A stretch of 64,000 bases of DNA, taken from positions 2,852,001 through 2,916,000 of the forward strand of contig JBNJNM010000011.1 in assembly GCA_052426225.1 (NCBI GenBank), in the 5' to 3' direction. The DNA is from Zancudomyces culisetae HAW-14-8 (Eukaryota; Fungi; Kickxellomycota). The notes beneath the pieces are model-generated. The model ran no database searches, was not told where the DNA came from, and saw only the letters and a program-made list of their open reading frames with translations. This document shows, piece by piece, positions 5,546 to 45,628 of this stretch. Both the position numbers and the translations under genes were made by a program. Positions within the stretch are counted from its first letter, which is position 1. Each line of letters opens with the position of its first letter.

Positions 5546-7595
5546 CTAAGGATGCTTAGTACAAGTAGGATTTACCAAGTCTTTTCCAAACAGATCCAGT
5601 AACCACAATATTACACCATTTGTCCAGCCAAAGCCGTACTGTCCAGCGTATTCACCACCCTCGGCCTGTTTTCCTATAATTTTTGCATCATACTTTTCAA
5701 ACATTTGACCATCCCCCCGTACATTCGGAAGCTTTTCCAGTAGATCTGGAATTGAACCTCCAGTAAAATACCAGCCACAATAAGCGTTATTTATGAAGCT
5801 TTGAGCGATTTGCAACGCCAACGCCTTCAGTTCACTATGCTGGCTCAGAAGGTTGTAATACATACTGGCTTCACTGTCGAGAGTACTATTTCTACTCAAC
5901 TCGTGTTTAGTTGTGGGAACTGCTGCAGTATTATTTGTAGAGGATGAAATAGACTTTACAGATGACAGAATTGCCTTGATTAACACATACTGGTGAGGTG
6001 CCCAAACATCTGGGTAATCCCATTGCAGACCTGTCTTAACAAGTGTTGCTGGGATACCTCCTGGGTTGGTACTAGCAATGTCACTCACAGATTCCCATGC
6101 ATTGGATATGCTACCAGGGTTTATGTCGTCTGATAGATACCAGTATGGCCAAAGGTTGGCAGGAGACCATACACCTGTAAAATTATTTCCGCTTATACTC
6201 CAGTCATTAAACATCCCTGAGTCTGCATCAAAAAGTAGGTCAAAAATGCTACTCTTTAGCTTCTCCGCCTTCGCCTTAAACAGGTGCTGATCATCTAGGT
6301 ATCTTCTTCTCAAGTTTTTGTTATTCGTTGCGTTTATAGCTATCCCGCTTAATTTATATATAAGCTGCATATTCCGGTATAATATTGCGTTGAGTTCTGG
6401 TGGAACGACATCACTAGTGTTTAACTGCGTCAGCAAATGAATCGGGTTTGAATTTGGCCCAACATAGCCCTTTATCCATCTTGAGCTAAAATCATGTCCC
6501 GACTCTGTTGCCGCTACAATTTCGCAAAATAGTGCTGTCCGTTTGCTTGTATCGTTGCTGAACAAGTTGGCCGTTTGCAAATCAGTTCTATAACTTTCTG
6601 GTCTTGCAATATTTGATTTTGCCTTGTACCTAAACACATTATGTTCAGTTACATCATCTCCTGTTTGCCTTTTAACTTTTATCATATGAGTACTGGCCCA
6701 GTGGTTATATTCCTTTTTAAGCGCAGGCAACACATCTATAAGTATCTTGGTATCTCCTGTGGCAGAAATGTAAATGTCCACCATTTGGGCCAGCATTGGT
6801 GGTTGACTTCGGTTCAAATAATACTCTCGTGTACCGTTTGGAACGTACCCGTACCTGTTGATAAGACTTACAAACGCTTTTATCATGTTTTTACTTAGGT
6901 CTGTTAGTTCCGACTTTAGTAGCCCCTCAATTATAAAATACGAGTCCCAGTAATATAGTTCAAAAAATCTGCCTCCAGGGATGACAAAGGGCCCCTCTAT
7001 ATCTAAAAAGCTACTAACACAGCCACTGCACAGACCCGACCTATCAAAGGTCTTGGTTAGATTTCTCCATACTTGGTGCACGGCTTTTCCAAACCCTTTT
7101 AGATATGGGCTCTTGATTGTATCTAGAAATTTTGGTGAATCTGTAAAGCCTGTCACTACTGTACTTTTAACAACTGTACTTTTATCACCAAAATTGTTGT
7201 TAAGGAACTCTGTGAGCTGTTTGTTGGTTGGGTTTGATCCTAATGCCCTAAATGATCTCAAAACGTCTTTTTCCGACTTTATTGTAGGCTATTTTTTAAA
7301 AATCAACTTTTTAGAAGCGAATCTTCGAGATTGATAACTATGTACTAGTTGTATCCATTTCATAATCATCAACTATAAATATATAAATGTATAAATGTAT
7401 ATATCCAAAGGATTGAAATACTGATTTTACCTTATCGACAAAGGTTTTGTCATCATCAAAAATGCCTGAAAGCTGAATTATGTCTAAAAGGCTGGGAGAG
7501 CAGTATATTGGTGACATGCATTTGCCATCTTCTGAGGAGCTCGCAGTATCCAGAATAAATAACGCTAGTGCGCAAAATATTCCGAGAGTTTTCAT
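5546..7595 (-). CDS. Secreted alpha,alpha-trehalase, GH37 (exons 7595-7431, 7288-5546)
   Basis: Motifs DKTFVDK|PT (joined across the GT-AG intron 7430-7289), PGGRFFELYYWDSY, NGTREYYLNRSQPP, ESGHDFSSRW, QWDYPDVWAP, GGEY and GFGWTNG. Signal peptide MKTLGIFCALALFILDTASS. Confidence 0.95.
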
Positions 7596-25714: not shown

Positions 25715-26794
25715 ATGAGTTATCAACAAGGACAAGGTGGTAGACAACAAAGAGGTGATGAGGATGAGAGCTCAGATAGAGGGCTGTTCAGCAGAAAGCA
25801 GGATAACCAACCTCAGCAGTATCAAACACCTACTGGCCAGCAACAGGGATATGGTGGCCAACCAAGACCACAGAACGCACCACAGGGCTCCAGTTTCAAC
25901 GCTCCCCAACAAGGTATGTATGGAAATAACGAGGAGAAGAAGGACTGGAAGAAGACAGCTGGTATTGCCGCAGGAGTCCTAGCTGCTGCTGCAGGTGTTG
26001 GTGGAGCAGTCTATGGCGGTGTTAAGATTTCTGAGCACAGAAAGAAGGAGCATGAAGAAGAGGAGGAGAAAAAAAATGAACGTATGCAACATGAAAAACA
26101 ACAGCAACAACAACAACAACAACAGCAACAACAGCAGTATGGTGGAAATAATTACCAACAGCAACAACAGCCGCCACAATATGGTGCAAACAACAGCCAG
26201 CAACAACAGTACAATGATCAAGGTGGGTCTTCCGGTTCTCAAGCTATCTCTGGATACCCAAGAGACGGTGTTATCTGTGTAGGACAGAGAGTAGCCCTTC
26301 GTCATGACCAAACTGGAAAATACTTAGCTACCCAGAGGGGTATTTCCACCACCACTGGCTCAAACCAGCAACTGATCTTTGGCAAATCTTCAAGGGATGA
26401 TGACTGCTGGTGGAAAATTGTTCCAGTAAACGGTGATAGAACACCAACAGGAGATCCTCTTGTTTTTGGCACACAAGTACGCCTGTGCCACATTCAAACA
26501 GGATGCTATCTGCATTCACACCGCGAGTACCAATCAGCAATAACCCGCCAGGGTGAGGTAACTGGCTTCGGTGGTGGAAACAACTCCGACACCAACGACC
26601 ATTGGGTTGCTGAGCGATTCAACGATGGTGGATATACACAAAGATGGGATGCAAACCAACCCGTGCGATTTAAGCACTCCAACACAGCTAGGTTCTTACA
26701 TTCTCATTACGAAAATATTGATGGTGGTAAGCAAGAGGTTACCGCTTACGGCGATGGACAGGAGCTCAATGACAAGTGGGTGTTTGAATACTAG
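25715..26794 (+). CDS. Q/G/N-rich protein with Gly/Ala hydrophobic helix and C-terminal MIR (beta-trefoil) domain
   Basis: Three MIR repeats: GQRVALRHDQTGKYL...WWKI, GTQVRLCHIQTGCYLHSH...QGEVTGF...NDHW and VRFKHSNTARFLHSH...QEVTAY...NDKW. No signal peptide. TATAAAA at about 25617. Confidence 0.85.
   Translation: MSYQQGQGGRQQRGDEDESSDRGLFSRKQDNQPQQYQTPTGQQQGYGGQPRPQNAPQGSSFNAPQQGMYGNNEEKKDWKKTAGIAAGVLAAAAGVGGAVYGGVKISEHRKKEHEEEEEKKNERMQHEKQQQQQQQQQQQQQYGGNNYQQQQQPPQYGANNSQQQQYNDQGGSSGSQAISGYPRDGVICVGQRVALRHDQTGKYLATQRGISTTTGSNQQLIFGKSSRDDDCWWKIVPVNGDRTPTGDPLVFGTQVRLCHIQTGCYLHSHREYQSAITRQGEVTGFGGGNNSDTNDHWVAERFNDGGYTQRWDANQPVRFKHSNTARFLHSHYENIDGGKQEVTAYGDGQELNDKWVFEY
26098..26137 (+). repeat. 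CAA/CAG poly-glutamine tract within CDS
   Basis: Run of about 13 Gln codons visible in the sequence. Confidence 0.9.
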
Positions 26795-27585: not shown

Positions 27586-29604
27586 TTATACACTTGAAGT
27601 TGCTGATCTAACTCTTGTCCAAGAGATAGTAGCGTGTACGGTGCTAGTAGATGTACTGCCTACATCAAGAGGTGCATTCGCAGAAATATTGGCGGTGTCC
27701 GTTAGCGGATTTGCTACACTCGTTTTTGCATTTGGTGCATCTAATATTGAGCCAGCTGCACCTTGTGGGTTCACCACACCGGCTTGGGTGGTGGTGTTTG
27801 GGTTTCTAACATTCCCAACGTTGAAGGAAGCAGTACGGTTTCGCTCAGGCGATCCCCTCCGTGTAGTGTTAGTGTTCTGTACAGTGTTGTCATTCTGTGT
27901 GGCGTTAGTGTTCTGTGCAGCGTTGTCATTCTGTGTGGCGTTAGTGTTCTGTGCAGCGTTGTCATTCTGTGTAGCGTTAGCGTTTTGTGCAGCGTTGACG
28001 TTCTTTGTGGTGTTGCTAGTTTGTGCAGCCCTGTTATTCTGACCCTTTGACCAATTTTTCTGGTTAGATCTATCCTTATTCGACAGATTTCCAACCTGTT
28101 GATTCCTACCATTGAATCCTGAAAAGCCCACACCACCTTGCGGAACCCGATTCCCAATTACACCCACGTTAATCCCAACGTTTCCCTGCATATTATTACC
28201 ACCCCATCCCATACCATTGTAGTTTTGATTCATATTTTGTTGGTTATACCCTTGATTAATAGTAAAAGTGACTCCCCCTTGACCATTTTGGTAGTTGTTT
28301 TGCTGGTAATAACCATTGTTTTGCTGGTAATCATTATCATTGTCATAATACCACGAGTCGGTTTGGTAGGGAATACCTGCAGTAGAATATTGTCCTGAAT
28401 TAGAATCTACTGGATAGGTATTGTATGCATTGTCATCCGTAAACTGGTAGCTACTATCAAAGGTTTCGTAGTCGTTGTCATCATAGTTTGGCATTTGTGT
28501 TTGGTATGCATTATCTTCAGTTGAGATTGAATCCACATAATCGGTAGGTTCTACATCATCACATGTTGAGTCAGCGTATGTGTCAGTTGGATATGTGTCA
28601 GTTGGGTATGTGTCAGTTGAATATACATCAGTTGGGTATGTGTCGGTTGAATATACATCAGTTGGATATTCATCAGTTGGGTATGTGTCGGTTGGATATT
28701 CATCAGTTGGGTATGTGTCGGTTGAATATACATCAGTTGGATACTCATCAGTTGGATATGTGTCGGTTGGATACTCATCAGTTGGATATGTAGTGGCAAA
28801 AATGGTAACAGTACTTGGGTAATAAACAGGGTTGTATGTGTTGTACTCAGTATAGCTATCTGTGTCTGTGCATGCTCCATCAGTACAATAGTTGTCTGTG
28901 TCTGTGTCTGTGCATGCTTCATCAGTACAATAGTTGTCTGTGTCTGTGTCTGTGTCTGTGTCTGTGCATGCTCCATCAGTACAATAGTTGTTTGTGTCTG
29001 TGCATGCGTCATCGGTACAGTAATAGTCTGTGTCTGTGCATGCTCCATCAGTACAGTAGTTATCTGTATTATCAGTAGATGGGTAATATGTTTGTGGATA
29101 ATAATCGTCAGTGTTGGTTGGTAATTGTGGATAACTTTGCTCGGGGGTCACTGATAAGTAAACAGTTTGGGTTTCATAAACTGTGGATGTTTCACAAGTT
29201 GTGGATGTCTCATATATCGTGGATGTCTCATAACATGTGTCAGGTGTAGTATAAACGCTGTCTACATCAGTACTACTATAGTCTACGTAATCACAATCGG
29301 TATCAGTGCATTGTACTGTTGGGTAGTATGTTTGGTAGGGTGTTGAGTCAGAGGAATCGCAGTTGTTTTGAGAACATGTCACTCCATACTCATCGCAGTA
29401 ACAGTAGTTGCACGAATCCCCAGCCGACCATTTCCCACTTCCATATATGCTAACGCAGCTTTGGTATGAATCTGTTACACTTTCCTGAGTATAGACAGGC
29501 GAAACTTTGCATTTATATATCGTTACTGTGTTTATCGCCCATACCTCCGAGAAAAAACCTGTTAATGCAAGACTTAATAGTAAATTTTTATCCGATCTAC
29601 CCAT
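27586..29604 (-). CDS. Secreted repeat-rich protein with pacifastin/VWC-like six-Cys module, CTD and YPTD repeats, N/Q-rich tail
   Basis: First ATG 29604 (MGRSDKNLLLSLALTGFFSEVWA signal peptide). Module C-x14-CNYCYCDEYGVTCSQNNC. Internal tandem repeats. Confidence 0.85.
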   Translation of the reverse strand: MGRSDKNLLLSLALTGFFSEVWAINTVTIYKCKVSPVYTQESVTDSYQSCVSIYGSGKWSAGDSCNYCYCDEYGVTCSQNNCDSSDSTPYQTYYPTVQCTDTDCDYVDYSSTDVDSVYTTPDTCYETSTIYETSTTCETSTVYETQTVYLSVTPEQSYPQLPTNTDDYYPQTYYPSTDNTDNYCTDGACTDTDYYCTDDACTDTNNYCTDGACTDTDTDTDTDNYCTDEACTDTDTDNYCTDGACTDTDSYTEYNTYNPVYYPSTVTIFATTYPTDEYPTDTYPTDEYPTDVYSTDTYPTDEYPTDTYPTDEYPTDVYSTDTYPTDVYSTDTYPTDTYPTDTYADSTCDDVEPTDYVDSISTEDNAYQTQMPNYDDNDYETFDSSYQFTDDNAYNTYPVDSNSGQYSTAGIPYQTDSWYYDNDNDYQQNNGYYQQNNYQNGQGGVTFTINQGYNQQNMNQNYNGMGWGGNNMQGNVGINVGVIGNRVPQGGVGFSGFNGRNQQVGNLSNKDRSNQKNWSKGQNNRAAQTSNTTKNVNAAQNANATQNDNAAQNTNATQNDNAAQNTNATQNDNTVQNTNTTRRGSPERNRTASFNVGNVRNPNTTTQAGVVNPQGAAGSILDAPNAKTSVANPLTDTANISANAPLDVGSTSTSTVHATISWTRVRSATSSV
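27866..27998 (-). repeat. 36-bp coding tandem repeat (NAAQNTNATQND), about 3.5 copies
   Basis: gcgttagtgttctgtgcagcgttgtcattctgtgtg repeated. Confidence 0.9.
28577..29062 (-). repeat. Coding tandem repeats: about 15-bp YPTD[E/T/V] units and about 33-51-bp YCTD[G/D/E]ACTDTD units with (TCTGTG)n
   Basis: Directly visible near-identical DNA repeats. Confidence 0.9.
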
Positions 29605-29652
29605 CTTTTGTGTATAGTTTGATAAAACCACTTTTTTCTTAAGAAGAAATTT

Positions 29653-39125: not shown

Positions 39126-40673
39126 TCATGGATGTACATGTGGACATATAACCTCTATGCTTTCAATTCGTGCCTTTCCATTAGATCCAAATATAAAATA
39201 TTTCCAGTCCTCAACCTTACCCAGTTTTCCACTGTTGAAAACTCTAACCCCTCCGGGACGCGAATATGGATCACCAATACCATATACAACTCTATCACCG
39301 TCAATCTGTGCAAATACAGTTGTCTTTTGAGAAAGCTGCTTTTCCGGTCCCAAGAATTTCAAAGAGCTAAAATTAGCATCTCTGGTCCTTATCCCAGACT
39401 TTTTGTTTGCGGTATTTGACCAAAAGAAATCCAAATAGTGATTATCATTTGCCTGTGCCTTGTTATTTTTTGTTACTAGACCCAAGTAAAAATCGTTTTT
39501 TGTTGTCACTCTTGCGATAAACAAGGCGTTGTTTCCTTTACAAACCGATCTCATCAAGTTTTTTTCAGGGTTATACGGGTTGCAAGCACATCCTTCTATA
39601 TTTCTACCACAATATTTATTTACCTTTCCGCAAACCCATCTGTTAGGATGGCATTTATTGTTGTAGCACTCATACTTATTTTTTTTGTACTTGTATGTAG
39701 TTTCGACACAAACTTTTGTTGATGTCATCTCACATCCACTCACAGTCTCAGTGGAATATACAGTAGAAATGCTGTCGACATTAAGAGTCACAACCGGCTT
39801 TTCGGTCGATATACTTTCATCTGTTTTTGATTCAGTACTTGTTATTGTAACTGTGGGCGTTTCTGTAGGCTCAGATGTAAACGTAGTAGTAGTAGTTGTT
39901 GTTGTTGAATCACTCACATTTAATATAGTGGTTTCCACCTTGCTTGTTGTTGTTGGGGTAATGGTTGTGGTATTTTCAACCAAGGTAGAGGTATTGGTAG
40001 TTGTTACCGTGACATCTGTGCTTGCTGTTGTTGTAATAACAGGAAAGTTAGCACTTGATGTGGGGGAAAAAACTCTGGTACATGATTCCCATAAATATTC
40101 CTTCCATGTAACTTGGTCATCGCCATAGCCGGCCCATTTTTTGAACCACGGGTATGGAGTTGGATCTGTCCAGCTTATTATAGATATTCCTGCTGTTTCA
40201 CCATCTTTTCCTATTCCGACATCAAAATATCCCGTGGACCTTGTAAAAATATAGAATGAAAAGAAGTTTGTGCTATCAATTCCCAATCCTTGCCCAGCGG
40301 CCACCAGCGGTCCACCTTGCACTTTTTTTATACCAGAAAGGTTTTTACCATAGCCGAAGCTTATTTCGTACATGTTGTTTACAGGACCATCTCCAGTAGT
40401 AAGACCAATCATAAAGTAGTTTCCAATGGATAACGGCGTACCATATATAAAAGCGGAACCGAACCCATTGCATACGTCATTTTGCCAGAAAATATTGGTA
40501 TTAAACGCAGGGTATGTTGGTGCCTCACTTGGCGTGGTTACTGCCTGGAGTTGTGGTGGCTTTATACCAATCATGGGATATTCATGTTTTTCGTTGTTGG
40601 ACGCTTGTTTCCCGAATTCTACTGCACTTGCGTAGTACAGGGAAATCAAACCATTTACAAGCGCCTTTTTCAT
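39126..40673 (-). CDS. Secreted protein with two putative Methyltransf_FA (FAMeT)-like domains, Thr-rich linker and Cys-rich segment
   Basis: Signal peptide MKKALVNGLISLYYASA. Domain 1: MYEISFG...SGIKK...FFSFYI...VGIGKDGE...ISWTDPTP. Domain 2: FIARVTTKNDFYLGL...ANKKSGIRTR...VVYGIG...YFIFGS. Confidence 0.75.
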   Translation of the reverse strand: MKKALVNGLISLYYASAVEFGKQASNNEKHEYPMIGIKPPQLQAVTTPSEAPTYPAFNTNIFWQNDVCNGFGSAFIYGTPLSIGNYFMIGLTTGDGPVNNMYEISFGYGKNLSGIKKVQGGPLVAAGQGLGIDSTNFFSFYIFTRSTGYFDVGIGKDGETAGISIISWTDPTPYPWFKKWAGYGDDQVTWKEYLWESCTRVFSPTSSANFPVITTTASTDVTVTTTNTSTLVENTTTITPTTTSKVETTILNVSDSTTTTTTTTFTSEPTETPTVTITSTESKTDESISTEKPVVTLNVDSISTVYSTETVSGCEMTSTKVCVETTYKYKKNKYECYNNKCHPNRWVCGKVNKYCGRNIEGCACNPYNPEKNLMRSVCKGNNALFIARVTTKNDFYLGLVTKNNKAQANDNHYLDFFWSNTANKKSGIRTRDANFSSLKFLGPEKQLSQKTTVFAQIDGDRVVYGIGDPYSRPGGVRVFNSGKLGKVEDWKYFIFGSNGKARIESIEVICPHVHP

Positions 40674-42418: not shown

Positions 42419-42886
42419 ATGGAGGTTTCGGGAGGCTCAAAAACACCAGCTGATTTTCTTAAATTGATTATGGGAAATCAGGTAATCGTTCGTTTAAATA
42501 CAGGTGTTGATTATAAAGGTATTGAATTTATAGACAATTTATATACAATCGAGATTTAAGTTGGAAAATGGGGAAAAATGGTCCAGGCTAAGTTCAGTAC
42601 TCTGAAATTTTATTACAAATTCGGTATACACTACTACTAACAAGGCAACTTGATTAATCTTTTTAGGCACTTTGGCATGCTTAGATGGCTACATGAACAT
42701 AGCTCTAGAAAATACGGAAGAATATGTCGATGGTGTGCTTAAAAATAAGTATGGTGACGCCTTTTTGCGCGGAAACAATGGTAAAATCGTTTTTGTTTAC
42801 TTATGCTAAATGTATGTATTATTTAAATGGGCTCAATATAATGTGTTTCCAAAAACAAAATAGTTTTGTACATTTCACTGGATTGA
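42419..42886 (+). CDS. LSM6: U6 snRNA-associated Sm-like protein Lsm6 (exons 42419-42518, 42667-42780, 42864-42886)
   Basis: Spliced translation: MEVSGGSKTPADFLKLIMGNQVIVRLNTGVDYKGTLACLDGYMNIALENTEEYVDGVLKNKYGDAFLRGNNVLYISLD. Confidence 0.96.
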
Positions 42887-44689: not shown

Positions 44690-45628
44690 ATGCACAAGCT
44701 TTTTCAGGTCGCAGTATTTTCGCTTTGTATTGTTACAATGCAGGTGCTCGGGCAATACGATATAAGTCCTGATCTCCAAGCAAAGTTTCCAAATAGAGAT
44801 ATTGCGAATGATAATATACAAGACCTATATGTCGACACCTATGGAGACATGAGTAGAATTCAATTGACTATAGGGATGCAACTGGATAGTAGTTGGGATG
44901 GAAAGGTGCTGTACGCCGGTTTTTCTTCAGACCAAACTCTTGTTCCAGATATTTATGAACTGAAGTTTTCATCTACAGAAGCCTCGGGAATTGCAAAGGG
45001 AGCCGCAGGTGCCTTGCTTGCCTCAGGACAACCTTTACCCAGTTTAAAAGCCCAGACCCTTGGAATAGTTATAGACAATTATGGAAGAATCACAATGGGA
45101 ACGGGTTCCTCTGTAACCAATCCTGTTGCTGTCACAGTTGCAAAATACACCGACAATTCGCCATTACCAAAGTTCAGGTATTTGCATTTGTACTCAGAAA
45201 GTGGAAAAGTGATCTTTTCAAACATAACAATAACCCGTAAGCTGATAGCTCCTGATGGGACACCAATTGAGCCAGTAACTGTGGTTGTGACAAACACAAA
45301 GTCAGAACTGGCGACTGTAACGGTTACAAGTATAAAAACTCAAACAGCAACATCGGTGTTCACAGTGCTGATTCCAACGACACTCAAAAGCACAGTTGAT
45401 ACTACTACCTCAACTACTACAGAGACATCATTTACTTTTGGAACCGCAGTGCCGACTACAACATCCACTACCACAACTAAAACGTCTACTTTAGTTATGA
45501 CAAGTACACTGCCGACTTCGACGGTTTCTTCTATAAATAGAACCACTGTATCAACTGCCACAACCACGACAGTACATAAAGTTGTATTCACAACGATTCA
45601 CTCTACAGTTACTATACGTAGGCGCTAG
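44690..45628 (+). CDS. Secreted protein with one FAMeT-like domain and Thr-rich C-terminal tail; paralogue of 39126-40673
   Basis: Signal peptide MHKLFQVAVFSLCIVTMQVLG. IYELKF...SGIAK...GALLASGQPL...ITMGTG...YTDNSPLPKFRY aligns with domain 1 of the 515-aa protein. Confidence 0.75.
   Translation: MHKLFQVAVFSLCIVTMQVLGQYDISPDLQAKFPNRDIANDNIQDLYVDTYGDMSRIQLTIGMQLDSSWDGKVLYAGFSSDQTLVPDIYELKFSSTEASGIAKGAAGALLASGQPLPSLKAQTLGIVIDNYGRITMGTGSSVTNPVAVTVAKYTDNSPLPKFRYLHLYSESGKVIFSNITITRKLIAPDGTPIEPVTVVVTNTKSELATVTVTSIKTQTATSVFTVLIPTTLKSTVDTTTSTTTETSFTFGTAVPTTTSTTTTKTSTLVMTSTLPTSTVSSINRTTVSTATTTTVHKVVFTTIHSTVTIRRR

Follow-up and report, generated by a model that had tools for sequence, protein, structure and literature searches.

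The locus studied here lies in a stretch of 64,000 nucleotides of the Zancudomyces culisetae genome (the window), and raises the question of what use an insect-gut fungus has for a putative secreted protein with two domains resembling the FAMeT proteins of arthropods. A reading made from the sequence alone had taken the organism to be a probable insect-gut fungus, which is the case, since Z. culisetae lives as an obligate symbiont in the guts of larval mosquitoes, blackflies and midges. That reading further proposed that the protein is arthropod-type, could be lectin-like or bind farnesoids, and may time sporulation to the moult of the host; these proposals fared differently.

Architecture and synteny of AX774_g7943

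The frame at 40673-39126 (reverse strand) runs without interruption for 515 aa and corresponds to the single-exon gene AX774_g7943 of Z. culisetae, as identified by homologue search. Copies in the older assembly have 9-10 codon differences and an intact frame. The gene is chromosome-internal, 2.3 Mb from an end. It encodes a predicted secreted, two-headed "dumbbell" protein whose layout is the one described previously (signal peptide, domain 1, Thr-rich linker, Cys-rich segment and domain 2), and all motifs quoted in that description are found in the translation. The weakest element is the signal peptide (aa 1-17, 40623-40673), which is probable on the basis of hydropathy; it is weakly hydrophobic, with a best 11-residue hydropathy of 1.39, compared to 2.2 in the Furculomyces orthologue. 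The first head, D1 (aa 62-199, 40077-40490), is acidic (pI 4.5), 19% aromatic and bracketed by C68 and C198. It is followed by a mucin-like stalk that is 51% Ser+Thr and contains three NxS/T sites (aa 200-312, 39738-40076), a basic segment with 8 Cys (aa 313-373, 39555-39737), and the second head, D2 (aa 374-512, 39138-39554), which is basic (pI 9.7) and bracketed by C378 and C510; all of these are on the reverse strand. There is neither a TM nor a GPI-like tail in the protein, the best C-terminal 11-residue hydropathy window reaching 1.07. A hevein or LDL-A identity for the Cys segment was not accepted, since the likeness was insignificant in Pfam and in the PDB sequence search (E 2.6-7), the latter including the LDL-A matches.

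A one-domain paralogue, AX774_g7941, lies 4 kb away on the forward strand (44690-45628) and has a signal peptide, one PF12248-like domain (about 44801-45247) and a Thr-rich tail. Between the two paralogues is an LSM-family gene (first two exons approximately 42419-42809, forward strand), which is outside the system and serves as a synteny marker. The same trio, again with the MFS and ATP-synthase delta genes as neighbours, is present in Furculomyces boomerangus and Smittium angustum, whose near-identical sequences were counted once, and this synteny places the origin of the pair before the split of these genera. D1 shares 57% identity with the Furculomyces orthologue and, by sequence comparison, is the conserved head. 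After D1, the Furculomyces orthologue runs on into His/Lys/Arg/Cys repeats. Downstream of four stops, in frame and preceded by a CTAAC branch-like site, there is a stretch that resembles D2 (39% over 57 aa, E 9e-11). This stretch is either decayed or spliced in, and its location after in-frame stops suggests that D2 may be dispensable. The public annotation, a 502-aa model, apparently merges the Furculomyces orthologue (5667-7544, reverse strand) with the LSM gene.

Relationship to PF12248 and predicted fold

Both domains had been assigned to PF12248 (Methyltransf_FA/FAMeT), an assignment that can be made firmly for D1 and only as probable for D2. With D1, the Pfam model scored 18.6 bits (E 0.0016), which is under its gathering cut-off of 24.2 bits, and there was no Pfam PF12248 match for D2, full-length AX774_g7943 or the paralogue. 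Scanning the Z. culisetae genome with the PF12248 model also gave nothing over the cut-off, and its single match was judged spurious. Against an HMM of canonical PF12248 members, however, D1 scored 34.7 bits, the maximum from 2000 shuffles being 7.4, and HHalign gave 96.7% (E 3.5e-10, 100 columns), compared to 0.14% for the reversed control. HHalign matched D2 to PF12248 only weakly (13-15%, E 0.002), with 1 of 2000 shuffles scoring as high, and the paralogue's domain aligned at 90.6% to canonical PF12248 and at 96.4% to D1. An alignment-free search with ESM features scored 0.96 to PF12248 clusters for D1 and 0.96 for D2, the latter having 189 of 256 features in common with these clusters. By these profile and feature comparisons, D1 is firmly a genuine but divergent PF12248 homologue, and D2 probably belongs with PF12248 as well, more weakly than D1.

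Animal and bacterial members retain 15-18 of the 18 invariant or near-invariant PF12248 residues, which include ND-x-H, YE-x-V-x-GGW-x-N-x-x-S-x-x-R, W, DP and S-x-W. D1 retains 8 of these, and D2 and the paralogue 6 each, and the two heads are therefore divergent homologues, not canonical members; the canonical polar site (D34, H36, GGW, R65) is mostly gone from D1. Direct BLAST of D1 against D2 revealed no likeness, which rules out a recent internal duplication as their source. Word-based homologue searches with D1, D2 and the paralogue retrieved only the query proteins.

Modelling of D1 with AlphaFold2 followed by comparison of structures, including with Foldseek, had been proposed as a check on the assignment. 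The model is all-beta (pLDDT 81, pTM 0.80) and has no Rossmann fold, in agreement with the earlier statement that the domain lacks a SAM-binding fold. Its matches to galectins and CBM66 (VIA Z 12.2-12.5, rmsd 2.3-2.6 Å over 121-127 aa) include the galectin beta-sandwich (Z 12.5, rmsd 2.6 Å, 121 aa), and the fold matches from Foldseek were likewise lectins and CBMs. TM scores to arthropod and oomycete PF12248 models were 0.77-0.81, a likeness that is partly circular because the D1 alignment held PF12248 members. As an independent check, a head of the X family described below was modelled from an alignment made up of fungal sequences alone (pLDDT 87); it falls into the ConA/galectin class as well, with Z 13.7 to the GH32 C-terminal domain and 12.3 to galectin-9. 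No methyltransferase was present among the best 50 matches listed per PDB fold search. Laminin G and SPRY were among the fold matches, and the ConA fold also serves protein binding. The galectin motif H-x-N-x-R / W-x-x-E-x-R is absent, D1 having no His at all, and the ligand therefore cannot be read from the sequence. PF00337 (galectin) had no Pfam match to D1 or D2, and reached E 0.034 at best in 3 of 33 X/Y heads. D1 and the X head are thus predicted to have a galectin/ConA-like beta-sandwich and not a methyltransferase fold, something that would fit the lectin-like role suggested earlier.

The predicted fold (Z 12-13.7) is shared with the tandem-repeat galectins (galectin-4, -8 and -9), CBM66 and the GH32 C-terminal domain, and the tandem-repeat galectins, as with AX774_g7943, carry two heads on a linker. 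Sequence identity to these proteins is, however, 7-13%, the galectin sugar-binding motif is missing from AX774_g7943, and its signal peptide, terminal cysteines and mucin stalk are absent from galectins. Amongst the FAMeT proteins, which are homologous to D1, the crustacean 2x type also has two domains per chain, neither with a SAM fold, but AX774_g7943 is fungal and below the Pfam cut-off. The crustacean copies are ∼40 aa apart, whereas ∼175 aa of mucin stalk and Cys segment separate D1 and D2. Insect FAMeT follows the order PF12248-DUF3421/DM9, and no DM9 was found in AX774_g7943 with Pfam.

An expanded family in the genome and relatives across life

A broad PF12248 profile matched two ORFs on contig C15 (E 3e-4), and searching the Z. 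culisetae genome with the head of these ORFs gave 51, then 57 matches in 28 loci (the X/Y family), which are distributed over contigs C6, C9, C11-C15 and C21-C23. In 25 of these loci the frame is intact, at 389-2407 codons, and the other 3 are broken copies. Most readable members possess a signal peptide, at least one acidic X head and long Ser/Thr repeats, and many end in a basic Y head, with stalks that reach about 2000 aa; several of the long ORFs were read only in part, and the C-termini that were read had no GPI-anchor signal. X and Y heads are homologous to one another (99.8%), and when the two are combined they align to the broad PF12248 profile at 92.9% (E 3.8e-7). Direct profile comparison with D1 gave no significant likeness, and X/Y therefore forms a separate branch, linked through the broad PF12248 profile. 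A C-x15-D spacing is shared by D2 and the X/Y heads and is found in 0 of 23 non-fungal domains, and the median pI of X heads (4.1) and Y heads (8.7) parallels that of D1 and D2. The same cysteine spacing recurs in two additional, divergent types of head, at C13:153774-154280 and C11:4589453-4589926, the C13 gene having the divergent type at its N-terminus and an X head at its C-terminus.

In at least four X/Y genes (C6:75839, C6:82150, C9:1168823 and C13:1310760), an N-terminal trypsin (PF00089) with intact catalytic triad motifs precedes long repeat stalks and heads, which argues that the heads serve as accessory (binding) modules. Fifteen of the 28 X/Y loci are located within 120 kb of a contig end, compared to the 12% expected, and 11 of 26 ends are involved; the nominal p of 1e-7 for this enrichment is overstated because the loci are clustered. 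Telomeric repeats were present at 9 of the 11 large-contig starts that were read. By analogy, this expanded branch resembles a subtelomeric adhesin repertoire, and the ∼30 Z. culisetae genes with PF12248-like heads are candidate gut adhesins. Amongst these, AX774_g7943 is old, syntenic and chromosome-internal, and belongs to a larger group in Harpellales that has PF12248-like heads on Ser/Thr stalks.

Fungal adhesins such as Flo1/Epa (with a PA14 head), Als, Flo11 and Mad1 are composed of a signal peptide, a binding head and a Ser/Thr stalk, and are usually GPI-anchored; the yeast adhesin families combine a binding head on a Ser/Thr stalk with expansion near chromosome ends. AX774_g7943 and X/Y share the signal peptide (by hydropathy), head and stalk of the Flo/Epa/Als type, and the X/Y branch is likewise expanded near chromosome ends. 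The fungal PF12248-like head is, however, predicted to be ConA/galectin-like and not PA14 or Ig-like, a GPI anchor is lacking, AX774_g7943 has a second, C-terminal head, and some X/Y members are fused to trypsin.

The label "arthropod-type" proved too narrow. A profile of D1, D2 and the paralogue, searched against 1.84 billion representatives, returned 16 proteins, of which 14 were non-self: 10 strong PF12248 proteins, one Harpellales protein, and three that were dropped as being repeat-driven and without PF12248. The matched organisms are lancelets, a crinoid, a hemichordate, molluscs (abalone and mussel) and Harpellales, along with two bacterial proteins and a protist-like protein; amongst these 16 matches no arthropod exceeded the threshold and, in a search of limited reach, no fungus outside Harpellales was present. 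PF12248 loci were additionally found in bacterial genomes (37 loci), on 22 viral contigs, many of them giant-virus, and in an oomycete cluster. Elsewhere, the domain is fused to F5/8-type C, DM9, CBM96, CUB, galactose-oxidase-like and Big_12/EGF/TM modules. DM9 is a mannose lectin, and DM9 partners in PF12248 proteins recognise microbes (PMC5712788). PF12248 is also present in six adhesive footprint proteins of sea stars, and in mollusc biomineralisation proteins (PMC9382459). The sea-star proteins Sfp7 and Sfp8 have two FAMeT domains each and are a putative adhesive primer layer (PMC9382459). Compared by description only, they are similar to AX774_g7943 in being secreted and Cys-rich, with two PF12248 domains and an aquatic attachment context, but their partner domains (EGF, hyalin, WAP and antistasin) are different, and any adhesive role of the fungal protein is putative.

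Some of these relatives have unusual arrangements. In a 2938-aa protist-like surface protein (Logan ERR13998649), eight PF12248 domains alternate with Big_12 Ig-like domains, EGF repeats and a TM helix. Giant viruses and Alphaproteobacteria encode proteins of ∼400-470 aa with PF12248 inserted near the N-terminus of a recipient protein, which looks glycosyltransferase-like by eye, with no Pfam support. Bacterial secreted proteins at three loci combine DM9 and PF12248 in the reverse order to that of insects, two of them also with F5/8-type C.

In a phylogenetic tree without arthropod sequences, proposed earlier as a means of detecting horizontal transfer, the fungal domains are on long branches beside protist copies and outside the animal group. 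An AU test did not reject an animal and fungal clade (p 0.37), with long branches and no arthropod sequences in the set. Host-derived (arthropod) transfer is not supported by the tree, and nothing points to a recent one.

Possible functions

We lean towards AX774_g7943 being a secreted, non-catalytic, two-headed binding protein, that is, a soluble cross-linker of glycans. From what is established (homology, predicted fold class, architecture, synteny, and the size and position of the family), we infer secretion, glycan binding, a ligand and adhesion as follows. The protein would enter the secretory pathway, and its stalk, judging from composition, would be O-glycosylated and act as a stiff spacer holding apart two galectin/ConA-fold heads (predicted for D1, presumed for D2). 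The acidic, aromatic-rich and conserved D1 would most likely stack on a neutral glycan, for instance chitin in the gut or a glycoprotein of the cuticle, and the basic Cys segment and D2 would attach to something anionic, for instance the wall or matrix of the fungus. Since it has no anchor, the protein would work as a soluble cross-linker, and may act as an adhesin, holdfast glue or wall-matrix bridge.

Several lines of evidence are consistent with a cross-linker: the galectin/CBM66-class fold of D1 and the same class for the X head, the fusion partners of PF12248 (F5/8-type C, DM9, CBM96 and CUB) and its presence in sea-star footprint proteins, the trypsin fusions, the charge polarity of the heads and the enrichment of X/Y near contig ends. 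Against it are the absent galectin motif, the polar site mostly lost in D1, the missing anchor, the weak signal peptide, the use of the ConA fold in binding proteins, the Furculomyces D2-like stretch behind stops, and the lack of direct likeness between X/Y and D1. Glue is released in the gut by the spores of Harpellales, although these fungi possess few adhesins of the Flo11/Mad1 kind and lack Als1/Mad2 (PMC5954228). Tentatively, the ∼30 genes could together be the holdfast glue or gut-adhesin repertoire of Harpellales, made up of anchorless two-headed lectin-fold cross-linkers that share PF12248 with sea-star footprints, with FAMeT as a glycan-binding module; this broader proposal is one that we hold to be possible rather than probable.

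It is also conceivable, though on the whole we doubt it, that the protein is structural, belonging to the fungal wall, the trichospore appendage or the matrix, and assembles through electrostatic head-to-head (acidic to basic) or protein-protein contacts, having no host ligand. The opposite head charges across the family would suit such assembly, as would the lack of an anchor, the loss of the canonical polar site, the frequent binding of proteins by ConA folds, and the mollusc biomineralisation proteins with PF12248 (PMC9382459). The trypsin-fused heads and the subtelomeric turnover with pseudogenes, on the other hand, are a better fit to an external and variable ligand, and conserved aromatics are abundant in D1.

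An unlikely reading is that of a secreted agglutinin or decoy directed at gut bacteria or at immune or mucosal proteins of the host, serving feeding or niche defence and not attachment. The bivalent, soluble design does resemble that of tandem-repeat galectins, trypsin fusions could target mucin or peritrophic proteins, and the microbe-recognising DM9 partners of other PF12248 proteins (PMC5712788) would point the same way. The X/Y stalks of up to about 2000 aa would, however, be better suited to a matrix or tether.

The idea that the protein was acquired from the insect host, and senses or soaks up farnesoic acid, methyl farnesoate or juvenile hormone so that sporulation is timed to moulting, found no support, and we consider it very improbable. 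The family name FAMeT, the one mosquito-derived gene known in Z. culisetae (PMC5026252) and the animal and fungal clade that the AU test did not reject are the grounds for it. The activity of FAMeT on farnesoic acid or JHA, which had earlier been called disputed, was never reliably shown, and MF/JH is normal in fly mutants (PMC10015273). A flat galectin-type sandwich is predicted and not a fold with a lipid pocket, no arthropod was found among the 16 profile matches, and an unanchored protein would have no means of signalling. The number of genes, ∼30, far exceeds the needs of a hormone sensor, and the loss of most canonical invariants (8 of 18 retained in D1 and 6 of 18 in D2) also makes hormone binding unlikely. 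A true SAM-dependent methyltransferase, suggested by the Pfam name alone, can largely be dismissed given the all-beta model with no Rossmann fold, the absence of methyltransferases from the best 50 matches listed per PDB search, and an inferred extracellular location, where SAM is not available.

Both the reading of the genes as an adhesin family and that of FAMeT as a lectin fold are plausible, whilst a hormone role and transfer from the host lack support. For the molecular basis of how Harpellales attach to the gut lining in larvae of mosquitoes, blackflies and midges, X/Y and AX774_g7943 offer a concrete candidate family, one that is invisible to current Pfam annotation. The predicted fold, and the modules to which it is fused in bacteria, viruses, protists and animals, suggest that the mis-named FAMeT domain binds glycans; if true, the domain would be a glycan-binding module across life, not a hormone enzyme. 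No report of PF12248 in Harpellales or any fungus, or of its fold, was found in the literature searched, which covered few subscription journals, and this agrees with the earlier remark that no such system is described in fungi; structure databases may already class the PF12248 fold.

Two other genes in the window are of note. At 27586-29631 (reverse strand) is an acidic secreted protein, without a Pfam match, in which Cys-Thr-Asp and Tyr-Pro-Thr-Asp are repeated; it is a candidate wall or adhesive protein. At 25715-26794 (forward strand) is a Q/G/N-rich protein with a MIR beta-trefoil, and a MIR gene is also located near the locus in Furculomyces.
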